Source: Chara braunii (lineage: Eukaryota; Plantae; Charophyceae). Taken from it: a DNA stretch of 57,269 nucleotides. Below the pieces are notes generated by a model. The model was not told the origin of the DNA, did no database searches, and was given only the letters and a program-made list of their open reading frames with translations. The DNA lies in the NCBI GenBank assembly GCA_003427395.1, contig BFEA01000023.1, forward strand, positions 5,269,785 to 5,327,053, given 5' to 3'. Shown piece by piece: positions 33,682 to 45,849 of the stretch. A program made the position numbers and the translations under genes. How positions within the stretch are numbered: the first letter of the stretch is position 1; the number at the start of each line of letters is the position of its first letter.

Positions 33682-33713
33682 CTTATACACATCTAGATGT
33701 GTATAAGAGACAG
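33682..33713. other. Nextera mate-pair junction adapter (artefact)
   Basis: CTTATACACATCT-AGATGTGTATAAGAGACAG palindromic junction beside a gap. Confidence 0.95.
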
Positions 33714-36683
33714 GCCCAGTTCCCCGCGTTCGGGGCCGGGGACCCCTCCCCTTACCTCCNNNNNNNNNNNNNNNNNNNNNNNNNNNNNNNNNNNNNNTTT
33801 TTTTTTTTACTCCTGGTGGATCAGAGACCAAGGTCCCTAGCAGCAAATACACCTTGAAGACAGGATTGGGCCCTTTCTAGTCCTGGTGGATCAGAGACCA
33901 AGGTCCCTATCAGCAAATACACCTTGAAGACAGGATACGGCTTCCGTTCAGCAGCCCAATCCCTACAGGCAGGAGTCACCCTCAACTGGCAGCGTGGATC
34001 TGCAGCTTTAAACCACCAGTACTTGGCCCATACATCGGCCGCGAAAAAAATATAGAGTAGAAGTGCTTCTACTCCGACGAACCAACGCGCCAATCTATAT
34101 CGCGGTTCGTTCATCATCGCAGCGGCTTGTTTACGGTCGCAACTTTGGGAAGTCCTGGTGGTGTGACGAACTACTTTCTGTTACCGCGCTATTTTCTGCG
34201 CCAGGCTGCTGGGAAGGGGAAACGACAAGTCGAAGGGGTGAGCTGTGGGAAGCGGGGTTCGGTTGGGCAAGTTGCATGGATACCCTCGCTTCTTTTTCGT
34301 TTTTGTTGGAATTCGTTGGGCCAGCTCCGGGAAAAGCCCCGCGCCGACGACGAGGTGACGGCGACATGACGGGCGCAAGAAATAACTGTACCATAGCTTC
34401 TTTCTTGTTCTGCTGTGAGCATTAGGAATTTTGGCGCGATTAGCGCGTGGGAATTTTTTTCGTTTTTGAATTTTTAACTGATGTCGAGCCCCCGCGGGCT
34501 CTCGGAATTGTTTTTCTTCTCGGAATTTCCCTTTTGCAATTAGGACTTAGACTAGGAATTTAGGTGCTCTGAATTTTGTCACGCAGCGTTCGCACGCATC
34601 TTGTGCCGCGAGGAACTGGGTTCTGACTGAATCGCGCCTTTAATCTTGTGCAACTGTCGTTTTTGGCGGGCGCGATCGTAACTGTAATCCTTCTTCTTTC
34701 TTGATTCTCCTATGTTGCCCGCCTTCTTCCTTTTTCTTTCTTGATTCTCCTATGTTGCCCGCCTTCTTCCTTCTTCTTTCTCGTCTCGCATACTCTGTTT
34801 TAATTGGCCTAGGTGTCTGCATGACCAGATCGATGCGTGGAGAGTGGCTACGAACCCCACGCCGCGGCTTGGCCATGCAGACGTAGGTACTTCCTCTCTT
34901 TTTGTCAATTTGGGCTTAATCCCGCACCTTTCGCGCAGACATGCATGCTATAAATTTCACAAGCACGATTAGATTGCTCTCTAAGAATTTCGAGGTTAGC
35001 GCGATCAGTGAGGGTCGGCTAACGAACACGTTGGAAGGTGAGTGAGTGTGAGAGTTGGGCGATCCGACGAGCTGGTGCCAAGTATGCGGGGTTGACGTGT
35101 AGGCAACGACGACTATGGCGCACGGGCGAACCTGACGGGCGTATGCGGGCCAAGCGGGGTGACAACTCTGTATGGATATGCCGCGATGGACTGCCGGTAT
35201 CGTGGGTATTGATGCGTGGCGACGGACTGCCCGCAGCAGAAGAGAGAGAAGGAGAGAGAGCAGTGGTGTGGGTGTGGGATATGACTTCCTTTTGTTGTTC
35301 CTTTCATTCCCTTTTCTGTCCATCTGTATAATTTTGAGTTCTGATATGGCCGATCTCTTTATCGCGGCCCTTCTCTTTCGAACTTCTTTTGTATATTGTC
35401 TCGGATTTTCCCTGTTATTTTGCTCGGTATGTATGCATGAAATGAATGTAGGACCTCTTTTTTTTTTTTGCGATCTTTTCGATCTGTTGTCACAATGCGT
35501 GTTGTCTCTGACCATTGTTCGCCTGCATGAGTTATGCAATCAGGCCTGATGAGGAATGCTCACTTTGGATGTCTGAAGTCTAACTGTCAATCCGTGCATC
35601 ACCTATATGGCATGTAATGATTGGAAGGATAACTGCATTCACAGTTGAACGCGACCGGCATGCGGAACCAATCGGTTGTTCCTTACGTACACGCATGCAT
35701 ACGATCGCGATCTTTACGTTGCCATGTACGCACTCGTCTGTGTTAAGTCAGCCTTAACCTCGTGTAAGGATGTGGGAAATGCGGCTTGCTAAACAGACAT
35801 GGCTGCAAGATCTCCTTCCTGGATATCTAACTACGAGAATTTGAGGGACTCGGAATACCGAGAATACTGGGAAGACGAACAACTCAGACGGCGAGGAAAT
35901 TTAAGAAATCCGGAATTCCCCTGCCTAACGGAAAATGGTCGATTATGCCTAAGGGATTTTCATTGTGCCATAACTAGCGACCCCAGGTGGCCCCGACTAC
36001 CCGGACACTTATAACACGCAATACTTCATATCCCCCTGTTTCGTCGTCATTACCACCAATTTCCCCCCCTTTCATCTCCTCCTCCCATATTACCAACTCA
36101 CAGTGGTACCGTGGAATTCCATAGCTCGCTATTGGCCTAGCCAACGGTGCGAGGGTTGTTGGTATCACCGGGGGCCCCGAGCCTTGGGGACGTCCCGGCA
36201 GGCTCGAACTGAAGCTGAGCAGCGACCCGCCTTGCCTGAATCAGAGGCCTGTTACGAGTGGTGTCGGCAACAGGCCGAACCATGCGACCAACCCCGAAGA
36301 TGGAATCAGCGGCGATGGTGATTTCTTTGCCTATTCGACCATAAAAGTTAAAACCCGTTGGCAAGGGCGATTTTGTCGGAATGATATCCGGGAATGCAAG
36401 AGTGTTTACGATCTGTCGGTACGATGATAACAGCAAGTGCCCCGGACTTTACCCTGGGACACACTGCGCATGCCATCTGCCTTATGCTGCACGACATCAG
36501 CTATCTCCCTTCTGAGTATATCCCTTTTCGCACCTGTACCCCTGGAACTTGGCACCGGAGATCTTAGTTCCGACCTGGGACTCCACCCACCCTCCCACTT
36601 TCCTAAAATCCTTGGCACACCCCTTTTTTGCACATTCGGGCCCCCATCGCACTCCGATCAGGAAGTCGCGCTGGGCGTAAGGT

Positions 36684-36696
36684 TGGTATCGGAGCC
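36684..36696 (+). promoter_or_regulatory. Primer binding site (initiator tRNA-Met type)
   Basis: TGGTATCGGAGCC, one mismatch from the usual TGGTATCAGAGC(C), about 150 bp upstream of the gag ATG. Confidence 0.75.
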
Positions 36697-36840
36697 GACA
36701 CGTGGCGGGCTCTAGGCTGGACAGGTGGGTAATTAGTGTAGAGCGACCTGGATAACAGAGGACACCCCCGAGCACGGAACGCGCCGCGACGCGATCCTAT
36801 AGTCACAAGAAATAGGTCGGGTGCTCAGCAGACGACCAAC

Positions 36841-38080
36841 ATGAACGCCAATCAACAAACCCCCAATCAAGCTCGACCGCCGCCTGCGCCACAAGCACGG
36901 GCACCCGTGGCCCCACCCGATCTCTACCTTTTTGACCCGGCACATTATCTCGCCGGAGCATGGTTGGCCACGCTCCAAGCACAGCAGTATTACAATGATG
37001 AAGCACAAATTAACATCCCCGCCCAATTGGGAGGGGATGCACATCACTGGTTTAGTACCTATGTCTGGACTGATCTCCCGACATTTGAGTGAGACTTTTT
37101 GAATTGATTTGATTATATCCATCCCGAACAGGCTCTCTTCATGATTAAAGATCGGGTTCAAAAGCCCCTCGAATCCGTTACGAAATACCGCAACAGATCC
37201 TATCGAATGTTCGTTAAAACTGAGCGAGGAGAGCACGTAGGAAGGGATTTATTTATCGATGGACTCCTCAGCAGAACGATGAGGGCAAAACTGCGAAAAC
37301 AGTTATCCCCCATCACTCATACGCTGCAACAGATTATGGCCGCCGCGGAAGAAATGAAACGAAAGTTCGCCGCGAGTTTCCTAGAAGGGGAAGATTACCC
37401 CAGAGAGGGGGATTCGTCAGAGTTGGCTCGGGCCAAGGCCGAGCTGGCCACGCTGCAAAACCAGTTTGAAAGTATGGGATTTGTGTCCGGACCAGTCACC
37501 TATTTGGAGCAGATCGCGCCTAAACGAACGGCTCTTAGTGTGATCGCAGGAATGCCCATCCCCGTGATGACTCCGCCCCCACCACCAGTGGAAAATCCCA
37601 CACGATCGAACGAATCAACCGCTTTACTGGAGCTAACCAAAACACTGGTCAACCTGATTCAAGAAAGCAAAAAGGAGCAGCGCGAACACAATGCTCGAAT
37701 AGAATCGATGATGAGATCGATGCGTTCCATAACTGTTCGAGCTGCCCCAATACAATAGGGATTGTCCCCTGCCCCTGCAGCCGGAGGTGTTGCAAGCAAT
37801 CTGAGCATCTGCTACCTGTGTCAGCAACCGGGACACATAGCCCGGGATTGCCCCCACCGACCCGCGCAACCGCGAGTTGGGGCTACCCCAGTAGCTGCGG
37901 CACAAATCGCCAATGGGTCGGGAAGGGTAGGAGCGATGCTGGAAGAAATTGGAGGAGGAGGAAGTATGTTAGCCACTACGGAAGAAGCTGCGGAGCCTGT
38001 TCCGCTAGATCAGTACATGACATTAGGATATCCGGGGTTGGGAATGATCGGGACTATTAAACCCGCCCACGAACCGTGAG
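36841..38080 (+). pseudogene. gag: gag with CCHC knuckle (in-frame stops)
   Basis: LGGDAHHWF; Q...ESVTKY; CYLCQQPGHIARDC. Confidence 0.8.
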
Positions 38081-41036
38081 AAGTGGCGGAATGGAGACCC
38101 TCTCCAGGAGAAATGGAATCCGGAGGACCCACCTTCGTTACGGGGGAAATAGATGTTCTAAACATCGTCCGCACTCTGGATCACCGCATTCCCCTCCGAT
38201 CGGATATTTGTTGTCCATTTCGGAACAGGCTAACGAGCGCATGTTGCAACATTGTAAGGCAAATCGAAAACGATTCACTCTCGCAAGAACGGCGAACACG
38301 AAAGGAAAAACCCCTGCCCAAGAAGACAATCTGAACCCTGCCAGTACGTCGGAACCTATCCAATTGGGACTAATACGGAAGGACGATCACTTTCTGCGGA
38401 TCAAAGTGATTCCGTGGAAATCTGTCGAATGCGACATTGAAGTCTGGGGAATTTCTTACAATGCCATCATCGACTCATGAGCCGTCGTTTTGGCTATCTC
38501 GCTAAGAGTAGTAGAAAGAGCGAGAAGAAGAAAGGACCTGATCATGCTTGCGGAGAAAGATCATCTCGTCTCTGCAGACGAAGAAAAGATCAAAACAGTA
38601 GGGCGAATGACGAACGTTGCTTTTCGATTAGGAAAGGTACATGCCCTGGGAGATGCCATAGTATTAGACATAAGTACCTACAACATTCTTTGAGGATTAT
38701 TAGGTCTCACATCGTTGAGGGCCAATCTAGACTTTGAAAGACGACCAATTATCCTTCGAAACACGGAAAGAAAACCGTACGCCATACCCATGAGACTGAC
38801 TCTTCGAACCATGACGGACGCAGCCCCACGGTCTCCTTTAATAGGAGCCCTACGAGTGATTACCTGGGAGGACCTCGCGGAATCCCAGGCAGAAAAATTG
38901 GTACCCTCAAGCGATACTGATGACAGTGAAGGGGAAGATTTAGTGGTCCAAGAGCTGGCCCAACAACGTATTTATTACCTAGCTCGACGAATGATTACAA
39001 AACCATTCAACATAACGGAGCGAAACCTACAAAGGACATGTGTCATGATCTTGGGTGAGCCCCTCGTACAGATTTCCAGGATGGTAGATTCTTTGGAACC
39101 CCCTCGAACCTTGTACGAAGGCGTTTCCCCTCTTCTTGCAAGATACAACGACAAGAGGCATTTTTTTGACATCACGGACTTACCCCGTTCCCTGCTACCC
39201 CCAGGGAAAGAGGTAAGATTGCTTCGCTTAGGGGCTGAGGCCAACTCTTTGAAACCCCCTGAGCGGCCCGAAGTTGAAACCAACGATCTCGGAATCAAGA
39301 TCGCGGAGAAACCCGTACCGTGGCAGGATATCCACGACGGCGTCACTCCGGAAGGACATGTGGCAATCCGCGAAGAAGATGCCCAAATGATGGCCACGAT
39401 GTTCTCTTGGCAGTCAGATTACTCGTTCATCTCTGCACCCCCTTCTGGAAGCACTGCACGAACCAATACCAAATCAATCACTGTCTAACTATTGGGACAG
39501 CTGTATGAACTACACGTACCACAGTACGTACCCGATGAAACCCATCACCTGATCGCGGACATCCTAAAGGAATATCAGAGAGCGATTAGCGTAACCGACA
39601 CCGATATCGGACTGTCATTAGTAATTCAGCACAAGATCCAGACCGGAAGCCACCCCCCGATCCACTGCAAACCATATCGATACTCCCTTGCGGAACGAAA
39701 GACAACTCTACAGAGGATTAGGGAATTCGAAGCTAATGGATGGATTGAACCAGCTACTGGGCCATGGTCGTTCCGGATAGTATTAGTACCTAAGAAGAAT
39801 GGGTCAGTCCGCATCTGCATCGATTATCGAAAGTTGAATGATATCAACGATCAAAGATGTATATCCTCTCCCCCGGATTGACGATTGGTTGGATGCGATT
39901 GGATGTGCTAATTACTTTAGTAAGTTCGATATTCATCATGGATTTCACCATATCCTGGTAAAGGAGGAAGACCGGCCAAAGACCGCTTTCGTTTTGTTCG
40001 AAGGCACGTGGCAGTGGGTTCGATGTCCGATGGGAATCTGCAATACGCTAGCTACCTTTCAAAGAGCGATGAACGTGATGTTCCAGAACTTTGTCAACAA
40101 GACTCGGTTAACGCAGGGGATGATTAGTTTCTGCGTAATCGTGTATATGGACGACATCCTGGTATACTCGGAATCATACCACGGACATGCACAACACATC
40201 GAATGGACGCTGGGAGCGCTAAGAGACGTCGGATTCAAGATTGCACTGGAGAAAAGTGAGTTATTCCTTTCGAAAATCTCCTTATTAGGCTACGTGGTGA
40301 CACGGGGAGGCTTGAGGCCCGATTCGAGAAAAGTCGCGGAGGTCAGAGACGCTCTAATTCCCACGTCGCTGACGCGGGTTTGAGCCTTCCTGGGACTGGC
40401 GTTGTATTACCATCGATTATCAAGGGATTCGCCGCTATCGCACGAGATGCGGAGTGCGAACAGGCCTTTACCACTCTCCAGGAAGCCCTGGCCACGACAC
40501 CTATTTTGATCCGACCGGATCCAGTGAAGCAATTCATTCTTATCACGGATTGGCAGCCCGAGACCATCTCCGCCATTCTAGCGCAGAAGGGGAACGAAGG
40601 TCGCGAACACGTTATCGAGTACACATCCCGGACCGTGTCGGACGAGCGAAGGAATGATTCGGCTCCCCAGGGAGAATGCTACGCGGTGGTTTGGGGGGTC
40701 CAACATTTCCACCCATATCTTTACAGGCAGAAGTTCCTTCTTGTCACCGACCACGAGCCGCTGTTGGCCCTCAAAAGGCTTACTAATTATACGGGTATGA
40801 TTGGACGGTGGGCGGTGCGGCTACAAGAATACGATTTCGATATCATCCATCGAAAGACGGAGAGGCACGGGAACGCGAACGGGTTGACACGACTGCATCG
40901 ACCAGCGAAGGTCGCCAAAGGCGAAGAGATCATCCCGTGGAAAGAACTAGAACCGACAAGCGGGCCCCAGTACGGACAAGTGGCAGTTCTTCCACGAAAC
41001 CAAGAGCAGGTACGTGGCAATGGATGGCGGAGGTAA
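38081..41036 (+). pseudogene. pol: pol: protease, RT, RNase H (stops and frameshifts)
   Basis: AIIDS*A; VLVPKKNGSVRICIDYRKLN; YPLPRID; PMGICN; VYMDDIL; FILITDW; ECYAVVWGVQHF; VTDHEPL; RWAVRLQEYDF. Confidence 0.92.
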
Positions 41037-42170
41037 CTCTGGAGCCTCTCCCTCTCCTTTTTCTTCCTCCTCTCTTCTCTCCTTACCTGACAAATTCTGT
41101 TATTTTTGCGAAGCCATTTCGCGAGTCTACTCGATCCCTATGCATCCCAGTGGGGAAGGGTATGTCGAATGTGTAGATTGTCGGCAGTGCGTGTCAAGAG
41201 CCCATGGCTCTTGCATCCTGTATCGAAGCGGCAATAAGCCTTGGCTATGCCCTCTGTGTCGAACCGATAAAATCCCGACCGAGGCTCGGTTCCTTGATGC
41301 CACGTCAGAAGGTCTGGAAACCAAAGATTTAGAAGGGTTAAAGTATGGACCGATGTCGTTTTGATAGCTACTGTAGTAGGGAACCCCCTCTGAGACTTCA
41401 CTACGGAGGACCAGAGAAGAGCTAACGAGAGGGCTCGGGACTATCGGTGGAACGAGGGATGGTTGGAGAAACGGAAGACGGACGGTAGTGGGATATGGAT
41501 GACTATACCGCACTCGTTCATGAGGTATGACTGGGTTAAGTCGGCGCATGAGGAAACTGCGGCCCATTTCGCCGTCCGAATCATCGAGACGACGATCGAT
41601 AAAAATGAATGGTATTGGTCCAATATTCGCGACGATGTTAAGTTCATCGTCCGAAATTGTCAGATTTGCGCCGCTGACAAGACGCCGATTCATCCACCAA
41701 GATCGATAGTCCCAACTGTAGTCGAACGACCATTTCAAAGGGTTAGCATGAATACTACCGATATAGTAGTGCCTCCTGGACCGAATAACTGCGAATATTT
41801 AATTTTATTGGTATTCGTGGATCACTTTTCGAAATGGATCGAGGCGTACCCATGCAGAACACGACAGGCGCCAGAAATTGCGCGGTACGTCAACCGTTTT
41901 CTCGGGACGCACCAGGACACAGAAGAGATCTTAACCGACAACGGGGCAGAATTTAGAAGGGAAGTTTTAAGGAATCTGGTCATACACGTTGTTGCCATTC
42001 GTAATACTGCACCCCACATGTCACAGTCCAATGGGCTGGTATAAAACGCGAATTGGGTGATTAAGACAGCTATGCGACGAAATATCGCGGCTTGGGACAG
42101 GAGGCCATGGCCTGATATCATAGATCACATCTTGGCGGTTCATCGAGGAACGCCCCACGAGTCCACGGCC
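41020..42170 (+). pseudogene. PHD finger followed by integrase (HHCC + DDE)
   Basis: CYFC-x20-CVDCRQCVSRAHGSC-x9-WLCPLC; then AHEETAAH...CQIC, VFVDHFSKW, LTDNGAEF, SNGLV. Confidence 0.85.
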
Positions 42171-42482
42171 CCAGTACAAATTAGGGGACATACTGCAGGT
42201 GAGGAAATGTGCTCGCCAAGGAAAGTTAGCGCCACGATTCTTCGAGTGATTTTGCGTGGTCGAGCGCGACCCGAACGGGGTGAACACAGTGCGGCTAGCG
42301 CCCGAGGTCTCAGGCAGCCAATCGGCTCGATCGATCGTTCGCCACATGTCCTATCTGCGTCCCCTCCCTATCTCCCCATCTTCCCCTTCGTCTGCTTCCT
42401 CCTTCGACACTGAAAAGGACGACGGCTGTCTAGCATCCCCCTCTCCTTCTTTGTCAGCAACTTCGTCCCCGCCTCCATCGCC

Positions 42483-44814
42483 ATGAGCTTTTCGGTGGAG
42501 CAGCCAATTAGTGCGCAGTTGACGACCCCAAGGGGGTGAGTTATGATAATCCGGCAAGTACAGAGGCCCCGACTTAGCCCCGACCTTCTTCGTTTTGCGG
42601 CCTTCTTCAGCATGACAACGATCCATGCAGCAGCCGAGTTCCAATTTGCGCAGGCGGGAGCGACACGGGTACTGGCCGAGATGTCGGCCTTTCAACGCCT
42701 GTCTCTGGCCGGGGTCAGCCACGTCTCCATCATCATTGTCTTCACCGGGGACGTCACCACGATACCTTCGGTGATCCACGCGGACATCTTCCGGACCTTG
42801 AGGGCTTGGGGAGAGGAAATTGCGGTCGCGTGGACGACGCTCCTGGCCCGTCGGGGAGACACGATCGTGACGTTTCACGACATCGATCTCCAGCTCCGCT
42901 CTTCCAGCAGCTCGTCGGCGATCCTGCTTCCGGAGCTTCGTCCTTTTGCACCGCCCCAATGAGTCATCGTCGTTTTTCTCTCTTCGGTCTTCCTTCCGAT
43001 CTACCCATCTTCTGGCAGTCCGCCCACGCCCCCACCCTCTCTTTCTGCATGAAGCTGCTCACCGTGCCGATCCTGAACGAAGATAAGTGGAGTGATTGGT
43101 GGGACGCTTACCTGGAGCTTCGCTTCTGCCTCGTGGAGGCGATCTTTCATTGGTACGACCCAGCGTCCGGAGGAGAAGGGACTGAGGTCCCAAACGATGA
43201 GGTGGAGCTCCTGATCGTACACGCGTGGCGCACGAGAATGGAGGGAGAACTATTGGGCATAATATTCGGCAAGGTGGAGGAGGGAAATCTCGCCCTCATC
43301 ACGAGCGAGTTACTGGTGTTCCTGGCGCAGCTAGTGGACGATCTGCCCCTTGACATCCTATCAAGATGCGACAGCAAGCCCGACCCTGACGTACTTCCTC
43401 TCACGCTCGCGCCTCATCTGCTGTGGTCCACGTGCACGGAGTTGGACGCGGACAACTGTCTTTACCCGTCCCAGGATCTCTACCTGGAAATCAACGTCAC
43501 TGATCTTGTGTTGTGGGACCTTGTCATCCGCCGCCCACGAAGACGACGACGACGACGACGATGACGACGAAGAAGAAGAAGAAGAAGAAGAAGAAGAAAA
43601 AGAAGAAGAAGAAGAAGAAGAAGAATCACGCACGGATCCGGATGATTCTGACTAACTCGGAGAAGAAGAGACCGAGGAAGAGTTAGAGGAAGAGGAAGCG
43701 GAGGAACAAGGGAGCGAGCCAGGGGAACCGGGCGATCGTCCCAGGCGAAGTGAAGAAGAAGAAGAGGCCGAAGTGCAGAGGCAACGAGAAAAGGTGGAAG
43801 GCAAGCGGCCGATCGAGGAAGGGCCCCTGCCGGAGCTGTTGTTGGGAGACCCATCGCTCAATCCGGAGCCGCCGCGCGAGGAGCCCGAAGATGATGGAGC
43901 TGCGGCCGAGGGATCAGGAAGCCGCCGCCGCAGGAGGAGTGAATCGCCGACTCCATCCCTTTTCCCACCCCGCCCTACCCTTCGCTTTAGTAGAAATCCG
44001 GGCGATCGGGCTTCGTCCCCGATCATTATCTCGCCGTCCCCATGATTTCATGATGGTCCACCAACTCCCAGGACGACCCCCTTTCCCCGATGGATGGTGT
44101 CCTTTCCCCCCCACCCTCTTCCATCAACTTTACGCCACCCGTCTCCTGATCACCATCGTCCCGCACTCCACCACTCGCTCCCTCGTCGATTCCTTCCTAC
44201 TCCGCGTCCTTTTCTTCAGTGCAAACTGGCGGGAATACAATAACATAGAAGTTTATTGTATTATCTCGGGTACGATCCCCTCCTGGGAAAACTACGAGAA
44301 TTTTCACGCTGCCCTCCGTCGCACCATCTCCACCTTTTATCCCGACTACCTCGCCTCGCTTCCCCATCAACATGAGTACCCTCGTTTCCCTCGCATTCAC
44401 CGTTCCATCCACTACACTCCCCTCCCCACCCTCGGAACCCAGGATATCCATCGCTTTATGCCCCCTCTTCCCCAAGATCCCCCCCCACCTCCTTCGTCCG
44501 TGATTAGATTGCCCTTCCCCGAGAATCTGTAGGATAGAGCCCATGATGCCACGTTGGATGACTTCCACACTCTTATCTTACGGTAAGTGGCACGTAGAGA
44601 GCTCCGCGTCGTCGATCGATTAAGAGAAGTCGACACGTGTCGAAGAATCGAGCAAGCAGGAGCTTGCTCAAGATTGGAACCCCCTAGGCGTCACATATGT
44701 GACGAACTACTTCTGTTACCGCGCGATATTCTGCGCCAGGCTGTTGGGAAGGGGAAACGACAAGTCGAAGGGGTGAGTTGTGAGAAGCAGGGTTCGGTTG
44801 GGCAAGTTGCATGA
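42483..44814 (+). pseudogene. Three sense-strand accessory ORFs downstream of integrase, unknown function
   Basis: 42483-42962, 42959-44045 (acidic D/E tract, one frameshift) and 44050-44814; globular-looking sequence with a few in-frame stops; ATGA overlaps at the junctions. Confidence 0.65.
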
Positions 44815-45849
44815 ATACCCTCACTTCTTTTTCGTTTTTGTTGGAATTCGTTGGTCCAGCGCCGGGAAAAGCCCCGCGCCGACGACGGGATGATGACGAC
44901 ATGAGGGGTGCAAGAAATAACTGTACCATAGCTTTTTTCTTGTTCTGCTATGAGCATTGGGAATTTTGGCGCGATTAGGGCGCGGAAATTTTTTTCGTTT
45001 TTGAATTTTTAACTGATGTCGAACCCCCGCGGACTCTCGGAATTGTTTTTCTTCTCAGAATTTCCCTTTTGCAATTAGGACTTAGACTAGGAATTTAGGT
45101 GCTCTGAATTTTGTCACGCAGCGTTCGCACGCATCTTGTGGCATGATATGATCTGCTAAACATAGAGGGACCTCTTCTATATATGTTGATATCACCTTGG
45201 TGTAAAGATATGTATGTGGGGTCAACATCGAGGTCTCTGGAAGTCCGATGGCTTGAGCATGTCATGAGTGAGCGTGAAAGAAACATGTCGAGGGAAATAA
45301 AGAATCATAAATTATATCAATGGATCAGACGTGTTGGAGTGGAATGATACGCACCTTTGCCCTTATGTCGATGTGTATTAGGTGATTTGTTGGAAGTAGA
45401 GAAGTCATTAATCAAATTCAATGGTGTCTCTTTCAATATCAGAAGTAGGAAGGGAAGAGTGTGAAGGAATAAACCGGGGAAGGAAAAAAAATGATCGAGA
45501 AGGAGGAAGAAACAATCAGCAAAAAGGGATGGTCGAAGGATGGGAAAAACACATATGAGTTTTATGAGTGACAAAGGGATGCTTCTGCAAGGCTTAAGTA
45601 TTCTAGACAATTGTAAGAATTTGTGTGTTAAAACGTTACCGGTCCAGTGTACGGGACTGACAAAGGGGATGCTTCTGCAAGGCTTAGGTATTCTAGAAGA
45701 TTGTAAGAATGTGCGTGTCAAAACGTTAACGGTCCGGTATACGGGAGACTGTATATGGATTATCGGTTGGAAGTTAATAAAGAGATGCTATGGTGGGTGG
45801 GTAGTCTCGTCAGTCTTTGAAAAGTGCTTAATTATTTATGGGGTAGTGC

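Follow-up and report, generated by a model that had tools for sequence, protein, structure and literature searches.

Three conserved accessory genes with stop-start overlaps and an AUG-depleted stretch in a Ty3/gypsy retrotransposon lineage of Chara braunii

The window analysed here, a stretch of 57,269 nucleotides of the Chara braunii genome (assembly GCA_003427395.1, contig BFEA01000023.1, positions 5,269,785 to 5,327,053 of the forward strand), contains a decayed copy of an abundant Ty3/gypsy long terminal repeat (LTR) retrotransposon lineage, found only in this species, which is a charophyte alga and not a land plant. The ancestral plan of the lineage consists of five consecutive sense open reading frames (ORFs), the first encoding gag, protease, reverse transcriptase (RT) and RNase H, the second a PHD finger together with the integrase, and the last three the proteins here called B (159 amino acids), CD (about 348 amino acids) and E (about 212 amino acids). 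A previous sequence-only reading of the window had proposed that the integrase is followed by an operon-like chain of ORFs joined by ATGA stop-start overlaps, forming a polycistronic and translationally coupled cassette of three or four unknown proteins. As regards the cassette, conserved sense genes in different frames and under purifying selection are indeed present, while their count and limits had to be redrawn, there being three genes only. The comparison included 12 loci of the same assembly, one of them with a second, divergent copy on the opposite strand, giving 14 copies together with the window.

Gene B occupies positions 42483 to 42962 of the forward strand, as delimited by translations and by its substitution pattern. 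It is whole, with 159 amino acids, only in copy L007, and in the window it is cut by an in-frame TGA at 42537–42539; the ATG at 42483 opens 18 codons up to this stop, and the 139-residue ORF at 42543 is the rest of the same gene. Also, the segment 42256–42486, taken in that description as the first accessory ORF, is in fact the C-terminus of the integrase (KLAPRFF..VVE..VNTVRL..RHMSYLRP), severed from the rest by an in-frame TGA at 42244. Gene CD extends from 42959 to 44045 on the same strand (about 328–348 amino acids). The chain that had been described is not continuous in the window, where a frame change near 43530 and a TAA (43653) disrupt this gene; the segments 42959–43564 and 43773–44045, previously counted as two ORFs, make up one gene in less damaged copies, being whole in L001, L002, L003 and the divergent L006 copy. 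Three single-exon gene models (P0002, P0004 and P0009, of 348, 348 and 344 amino acids) share the initial methionine, an acidic tract and an ...SSP end before the stop. The protein begins with a conserved N-terminal domain of about 190 residues, in which Trp, Leu and Asp are invariant at many positions; behind it come a long acidic stretch, a short helix and a Ser/Pro tail that is basic and rich in Arg. Gene E, again on the forward strand, lies at 43894–44532 (212 codons in the window), in the +1 frame relative to CD, and starts at the first conserved ATG after the CD start; its frame is open from 43894 for 211–234 codons in five copies, overlapping the final 50 codons of CD, and the gene is whole in the window, L005, L006 and L008. 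The Pro/Ser-rich tails SPPPSP, FAPPQ and ISPSP are present as had been reported. The last ORF was said to run into the 3' LTR; the last gene ends instead at 44532, 165 nucleotides before the LTR. Codon periodicity was looked for in these 165 nucleotides 3' of E in a MAFFT alignment of eight copies and none was found, nor does 44587–44814 show any.

The same eight-copy alignment was used for the ratio of nonsynonymous to synonymous substitutions (dN/dS, NG86), the value for E being taken from the stretch downstream of the CD stop. In their own frames, the ratios were 0.22 for B, 0.16 for the C part of CD, 0.36 for its D part and 0.15 for E, against 0.9–1.85 when the same regions were read off-frame (1.1–1.7 for B), with dS values of 1.0–1.4. 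Variation over B, CD and E amounted to 0.44–0.49 at third codon positions and to 0.16–0.32 at the first two. Word-index protein searches with B and E returned nothing in the length range allowed, an effect of the length filter and of missing gene models rather than of true absence; tblastn located both genes in every locus, and wherever the pieces could be placed the frame steps were identical: -1 from the integrase to B, -1 from B to CD and +1 from CD to E. B, CD and E are thus shown to be genuine proteins, maintained while the lineage diversified. The alignment of family copies with dN/dS, which the sequence-only reading had named as its own check, returned no single continuous ORF, conserved junctions and non-neutral evolution; none of the three outcomes by which that reading would have been refuted was thus observed.

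These data bear directly on the idea that the whole arrangement is an artefact of decay, that is, one dead ORF or non-coding DNA broken up by chance frameshifts, or a series of fusions made by programmed frameshifting. The window copy is heavily damaged, with mechanical 4-nucleotide overlaps occurring even inside pol (38477 and 40380), and in L006 B and CD are fused in frame, all of which would fit such an origin. Nevertheless, 13–14 independently decayed copies repeat these frame steps and junction motifs, each gene is under purifying selection in its own frame only, the start codons are conserved, and the frame relation between RNase H and integrase differs between subfamilies, so that an artefact is hardly credible. 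In L002 the CD frame has a stop three codons upstream of its ATG and no slippery heptamer. Programmed frameshifting was rejected on account of the conserved starts, the stops just upstream in the downstream frame and the lack of a slippery site.

The junctions between the genes were then compared one by one. The integrase stop overlaps the B start in an ATGA at 42483–42486 (forward strand). Here CGCCATGAG stands in 12 of 12 aligned copies, with CGCCATGAT in its place in the divergent L012, and the ATGA itself is kept in 13 of 13; just upstream lies a variable pyrimidine-rich tract with insertions and deletions. The B stop overlaps the CD start in a second ATGA on the same strand, at 42959–42962, which reads C(A/G)ATGA in 12 of 13 aligned copies and in L012 (13 of 14 in total), the exception being L006, where ACGA and an 8-nucleotide deletion leave B and CD fused. 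In either case the final A of the TGA is retained, while codon 2 of the gene that follows is variable (AGC, AGT, AAC, AAT or ATA, for Ser, Asn or Ile). Since they have been conserved in 13 of 13 and 13 of 14 cases despite a 20–50% divergence of the flanking sequence, even in subfamilies with 35–41% protein identity, these two overlaps exceed what chance would be expected to leave.

The third junction behaves in a different way. All three ATGA sites (42483–42486, 42959–42962 and 44042–44045) can be read in the window as had been noticed, together with a mini-ORF of three codons (M-I-S, ATG-ATT-TCA-TGA, forward strand, 44042–44053) whose stop overlaps an ATG at 44050. As a family feature, the third site did not hold: the TGA of CD (44043–44045) is found in 13 of 13 copies, but with T or G as the preceding base in 11 copies an ATGA is left in 2 of 13, and the mini-ORF is private to the window copy. 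The E-frame ATGs cluster around the CD stop, 42 nucleotides upstream of it in eight copies and 8 nucleotides downstream in five. The overlapping or nearby stop and restart codons expected for termination-reinitiation are found at the first two junctions, the boundary between CD and E not being an ATGA in 11 of 13 copies.

A further junction, between RNase H and the integrase, lies at 41020–41036 of the forward strand, where the GCAATGG start of the PHD-integrase ORF stands beside the RNase H stop in an alignment of six copies and L012. The stop follows 5–14 nucleotides after the A of this ATG in the six copies and precedes the ATG by 12 nucleotides in L012, the frame relation being +1 for the window as for L001, L005 and L006, but -1 for L012. 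Because this relation varies while the strong-context ATG is conserved, we argue that the integrase, which has an ORF of its own, would be separately initiated rather than reached by frameshifting.

Taken by themselves, the junctions could suggest a pure chain of termination and reinitiation, in which a full-length polycistronic RNA is translated with a restart at each stop-start overlap, as in caliciviruses, victoriviruses and SART1. Such a chain would account for an ATGA kept at two junctions across deep divergence, for the retention of the A completing the TGA while the second codon changes, for the adjacent RNase H stop and integrase start, and for the gathering of E-frame ATGs near the CD stop; AUGA and UAAUG restart sites are, in addition, established in viruses and in SART1 (PMC10275272). 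It would leave unexplained the four-fold depletion of ATG in B and CD and the graded start contexts described below, and it would demand three or four serial restarts after ORFs of 160–1400 codons, leaving very little product. Furthermore, the third junction is not an ATGA in 11 of 13 copies, and the consensus folds that RNAalifold gave upstream of the junctions, at -1.2 to -6.7 kcal/mol and with little covariation, include no convincing conserved structure. The chain is, on balance, considered unlikely. Regarding the translational coupling that had been proposed from the window, the two conserved overlaps stand in its favour, while reinitiation as the sole mechanism does not agree with the lack of a convincing conserved RNA structure, the ATG depletion and the graded contexts.

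Conserved blocks (GCUUCGUCC) were also observed upstream of the B/CD and CD/E junctions. A block shared by the two sites, G(G/A)GCTTCGTCC, at 42925–42945 and 44005–44022, lies 20–27 nucleotides upstream of the B/CD overlap and of the CD stop and may reflect dual coding or an RNA signal. The lone feature returned by RNAalifold was a conserved 5-base-pair hairpin (UCGGG...CCCGG) at the second block, near the CD stop, almost without covariation.

The position of the E start was approached through the region in which CD and E overlap. The third-position variation of CD drops inside the overlap, from 0.58 and 0.51 to 0.42, 0.34 and 0.21, and in the last 30 nucleotides the most variable position is the third position of the E frame. 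Since the variation of CD falls there, the E start most likely lies upstream of the CD stop, at 43894, and not at the ATGs of 44050–44053. An antizyme-like +1 shift at the CD stop had been considered, and was dropped after the conserved strong ATG of the E frame at 43894 turned up.

The distribution of ATG triplets provides a second line of evidence. From the B start to the CD stop, and in any frame, the only ATGs present in the majority of copies are the CD start (42959) and those at 43894 and about 43996, the latter two belonging to the E frame. Between the B start and 43894, apart from the CD start, a few ATGs are common to two to five closely related copies and nearly all others belong to a single copy, while the last shared ATG upstream of B is about 280 nucleotides away. 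When six copies were pooled, ATG occurred 18.2 times per kilobase (kb) from gag to integrase (observed/expected 1.17), 4.6 times in B (0.39), 4.2 times in CD up to 43894 (0.29) and 10.7 times in E (1.31); its share among the triplets ATG, AGT, GAT and GTA was 0.29 from gag to integrase, 0.11 in B and CD, and 0.30 in E. In the intact CD of P0002 there is not one internal methionine across 348 residues. B and CD are therefore depleted about four-fold in ATG in all frames, which amounts to an AUG desert of about 1.4 kb.

The three starts are, moreover, graded in context. The B start has G at -3 and A at +4 in 12 of 12 copies, a moderate context; the CD start has C at -3 and A at +4 in all copies, a weak one; and at the E start (43894) 12 of 13 copies combine A or G at -3 with G at +4, a strong context, the exceptions there being L001, which reads ATA, and the divergent L006 copy, whose ATG lies 3 nucleotides upstream. 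Upstream ORFs depleted in AUG, and suboptimal upstream starts combined with an optimal last one, are features expected of leaky scanning of the type described for rice tungro bacilliform virus (RTBV) and the badnaviruses, and both were found. In RTBV, leaky scanning has been documented to rest on weak starts combined with ORFs I and II that are free of AUG, and in badnaviruses it is predicted to rest on the same features (PMC5902531).

Given this match, we infer that CD and E would be reached by scanning ribosomes which pass the starts of B and CD. The reading as a whole, with five ORFs, genuine B, CD and E and leaky scanning, is given a probability of roughly 0.6. Scanning 40S subunits would pass the moderate start of B and the weak start of CD, cross the nearly ATG-free B and CD, and reach the strong start of E, as on the pregenomic RNA of RTBV and the badnaviruses. 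Two ways of entry could be envisaged. In the first, a subgenomic or spliced RNA would begin within about 270 nucleotides upstream of B; in the second, ribosomes terminating at the integrase stop would stay on the RNA and either restart at the ATGA or scan on from it, which would give the conserved ATGA overlaps a role as reinitiation site. Leaky scanning may therefore be combined with reinitiation at the ATGA sites.

In another view, B, CD and E would each be expressed from a spliced or internally promoted mRNA of its own, as in retroviruses, the overlaps being a matter of compaction. The env-like extra sense ORF of Bagy-2, a plant gypsy element, is expressed from a spliced RNA (PMC7264820), a pyrimidine-rich tract precedes the B start in all copies, and an ATGA overlap, once formed, would be hard to lose if both genes are needed. 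Separate mRNAs, nevertheless, give no cause for avoiding ATG in three frames over 1.4 kb, and a conserved AG acceptor is absent both within 60 nucleotides upstream of the B start and at the CD start; RNA joints were not seen either, at near-zero coverage. Expression of this kind is regarded as distinctly improbable.

Several points weigh against leaky scanning as well. By itself, it does not explain why stops should be placed exactly on ATGs. Also, because the B ATG lies about 5.6 kb 3' of the gag ATG on the genomic RNA, it requires either a subgenomic RNA or a reinitiation step. The zone upstream of B is only weakly significant as an ATG-poor zone (9 observed, 16 expected), and the six pooled copies are related, so that P values from pooled data, such as the 9e-14 of a Fisher test comparing the ATG share of gag–integrase with that of B and CD, overstate independence; for this reason, more weight is given to the pattern of ATGs that occur in one copy each. 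Three oligo-dT RNA runs of 2026 (at 80% similarity) showed near-zero depth over B to E, with no joints or mapped ends, and were uninformative, also as to whether the first ORF is near the 5' end of an mRNA or reached by shunting, as leaky scanning of the RTBV type would require. Finally, every copy examined is damaged, which makes the activity of the element and its expression hypothetical.

In a bolder version, the genomic RNA would be a five-cistron messenger translated in a caulimovirid-like manner, the integrase being reinitiated at the RNase H stop and B at the integrase stop, CD and E reached by leaky scanning of the ribosomes remaining on the RNA, and one of the orphan proteins acting as an analogue of TAV, by which ribosomes would be kept competent after long ORFs. 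This is held to be very doubtful; if true, caulimovirid-style expression would exist inside an LTR retrotransposon of a streptophyte alga, bearing on the origin of this strategy in pararetroviruses. LTR retrotransposons have been described as translating a dicistronic Gag-Pol RNA by means of ribosomal frameshifting, and the translation of several ORFs by leaky scanning or reinitiation as typical of Caulimoviridae and of a small number of RNA viruses, no LTR retrotransposon being named among them and no TAV-like activator being known outside Caulimoviridae (PMC5902531). For extra ORFs such as env-like genes, splicing has been reported in other papers.

The comparison with known systems shows both likenesses and differences. 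Tungroviruses and badnaviruses are, like the Chara element, reverse-transcribing and related to Ty3/gypsy, with ORFs that meet in short overlaps or in fused stop and start codons, as in caulimovirids in general, with upstream ORFs lacking internal AUGs, and with weak upstream starts and a strong last one (PMC5902531). However, their small ORFs precede the polyprotein, beside the leader, whereas those of Chara follow the integrase, about 5.6 kb past the gag ATG; LTRs and an integrase are present in the Chara element, in which no shunt leader was recognised, and B, CD and E have no similarity to caulimovirid proteins. The 35S RNA of caulimoviruses is likewise a multi-ORF RNA with adjacent stops and starts and reinitiation after long ORFs, but TAV is required there, and the Pfam searches recovered neither TAV nor another domain from B, CD or E. 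Caliciviruses, influenza B, victoriviruses, the hypovirus CHV1 and the non-LTR element SART1 also use out-of-frame overlapping stop-start codons (PMC10275272). These AUGA and UAAUG systems serve one short downstream ORF and rely on a defined RNA structure upstream or downstream, unlike the Chara element, which has up to four serial junctions and no convincing structure of this kind conserved. As for the extra ORFs of plant LTR elements (env-like in Athila and Bagy-2, ORF1 in Ogre, antisense in Retand, Grande and RIRE2), they resemble B, CD and E in being lineage-specific, conserved, unassigned in function and, in position, between pol and the 3' LTR; they are usually single, and often antisense or env-like with transmembrane segments (PMC7264820, PMC11963269), whereas the Chara element has three sense genes in three frames, with ATG avoidance and no convincing transmembrane segment. 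No published account was found of an LTR retrotransposon that combines a cassette of three sense genes with an integrase in its own ORF and with upstream cistrons depleted in AUG.

Regarding the function of the three proteins, Pfam searches with the window pieces and 25 family members returned only low-complexity acidic hits (E > 0.008), and profile searches against PDB sequences gave no match to solved structures. In the ESM Atlas, the best score for B and E was 0.83, which is chance level. AlphaFold2 models were of low confidence, with a predicted local distance difference test (pLDDT) score of 43 for CD (25 sequences) and 53 for E (9 sequences), and a Foldseek search of the E model, itself too poor for trust, gave nothing at E <= 0.001 in PDB and BFVD. 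Relatives of B, CD or E outside Chara were not detected in the sequence and profile searches. Since no convincing transmembrane segment was found in any of them (the highest 19-residue hydropathy being 1.83 in B, 1.19 in CD and 1.04 in E), an env-like role is unlikely. The acidic tract and the Arg-rich tail suggest that CD could be a nuclear or nucleic-acid-associated protein, and, as a best guess, all three would be accessory or regulatory factors specific to the element.

The extent of the family was assessed through CD. The piece of 201 amino acids from 42959, which is the C domain of CD, matched 44 proteins, all from Chara braunii, with 53–79% identity. A profile of the CD N-terminal domain, searched against 1.84 billion cluster representatives, retrieved 154 clusters (at 50% identity); ten of these, picked among the weaker and longer matches and including the three weakest listed, were looked up, and 10 of 10 belonged to Chara braunii, many of them annotated as RT or RNase H. 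Since there are 154 clusters at this identity level and those sampled are all from one species, the family is, on these matches, an old one of large size and much diversity, which to date has been seen in Chara braunii only. None of the 14 copies is fully intact, and the lesion sites differ from copy to copy, as independent decay predicts. What the family offers is a set of three orphan proteins kept by selection, an integrase separate from RT and RNase H, two deeply conserved ATGA overlaps and an AUG desert of about 1.4 kb, with sequence predictions which are concrete and testable in an organism near the base of land plants. If confirmed, they would extend non-canonical eukaryotic translation to LTR retrotransposons and enrich the known biology of the repeat-rich Chara genome by several accessory proteins.

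The remaining parts of the element are those of a Ty3/gypsy (Metaviridae) retrotransposon. Pfam domains span 37762–42041 in the canonical order zf-CCHC, RVT_1 (1.6e-25), RT_RNaseH (1.1e-27), Integrase_H2C2 and rve, in agreement with the order gag (zf-CCHC), protease, RT, RNase H and integrase, and flanking LTRs are present with a primer-binding site (PBS) 3' of the 5' LTR, the 3' LTR being truncated in this copy. ORF1 (gag with zf-CCHC, protease, RT and RNase H; 36841–41036, forward strand) was found by tblastn to be a single frame in the better-preserved L006 and L012, with several frame changes and stops in the window. ORF2 (41020–42486, forward strand), delimited by Pfam, tblastn and its sequence, encodes a PHD finger and an integrase with H2C2 and rve domains, a C-terminal GPY/F-like region and a Ser/Pro tail. 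The PHD-type zinc finger (C..C...C..C...H..C...C..C) at the integrase N-terminus falls within 41020–41364. The window copy is dead, its pol being spread over several frames, and its integrase is interrupted by a stop at 42042, lacks about 230 nucleotides near 42165 through a deletion and carries the TGA at 42244 already mentioned.

The 5' LTR, of about 2.5 kb, extends over 34162–36688 of the forward strand, as established by self-BLAST, by the repeat of the homologous 'leader' in other copies and by the alignment of LTR ends. In the window only its first 444 nucleotides are repeated, 34162–34605 against 44698–45140, with 94.1% identity by self-BLAST. In other copies, the homologous 'leader' reappears downstream of the 3' LTR start, up to the equivalent of about 36686 in the window; judged by them, the 444-nucleotide repeat is just the beginning of the family LTR of about 2.5 kb, and not a whole LTR. 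The 3' LTR of the window (44698–45140, forward strand) thus breaks off after 444 nucleotides, with unrelated sequence from 45141, the cause being a truncation, or a later insertion or deletion. The PBS, TGGTATCGGAGCC (36686–36700, forward strand), overlaps the last bases of the 5' LTR according to the comparison of LTR ends, and we take it to resemble the initiator tRNA-Met PBS of plants. The non-coding stretch between E and the 3' LTR (44533–44697, forward strand) has GGCGTCACATA at its 3' end; this sequence, directly before the 3' LTR, forms with the LTR start TGTGAC the palindrome GTCACATATGTGAC (44687–44703). In other copies (L001, L004, L006 and L009) the 3' LTRs end in ...GAGGTTGGGCGTCACA (...GGTTGGGCGTCACA), and the 5' LTRs end in ...GAGGTTGG (...GGTTGG), running directly into the PBS (36680–36700 in the window). 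The differing LTR ends together with GGCGTCACATA represent the layout known as 'split right end' or 'split integrase end'.

In the oligo-dT runs already cited, the conserved pol was weakly covered in one of the three. Many reads in all three match only 41047–41081 and 43660–43705 (pyrimidine-rich/GAA-rich), continuing from there into unrelated sequence; they are low-complexity cross-matches to other transcripts, and not expression of this copy. At 41032/41033, at the RNase H stop, AG/GTAA resembles a 5' splice site, and at 42487/42488, at the B start, a pyrimidine tract with the AG of ATGAG resembles a 3' splice site. A splice from 41032 to 42487, by which B would continue the frame of ORF1 with the integrase left out, was set aside as speculation, the frame match having a one-in-three chance of arising and the RNA giving it no support.

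Two minor observations were made besides. Outside the element, at 33682–33714 of the window, CTTATACACATCT is followed by AGATGTGTATAAGAGACAG, adjoining a gap of Ns at 33760–33797; this is presumably a Nextera mate-pair junction adapter beside a scaffold gap, in which case it would be an assembly artefact and not biology. Furthermore, L002 carries an insertion of about 520 nucleotides between RNase H and the PHD-integrase start (L002:7290–7810), with internal repeats (GGTCCTGAAGTGGTGAAAGGT-like units), which may be a small non-autonomous element.

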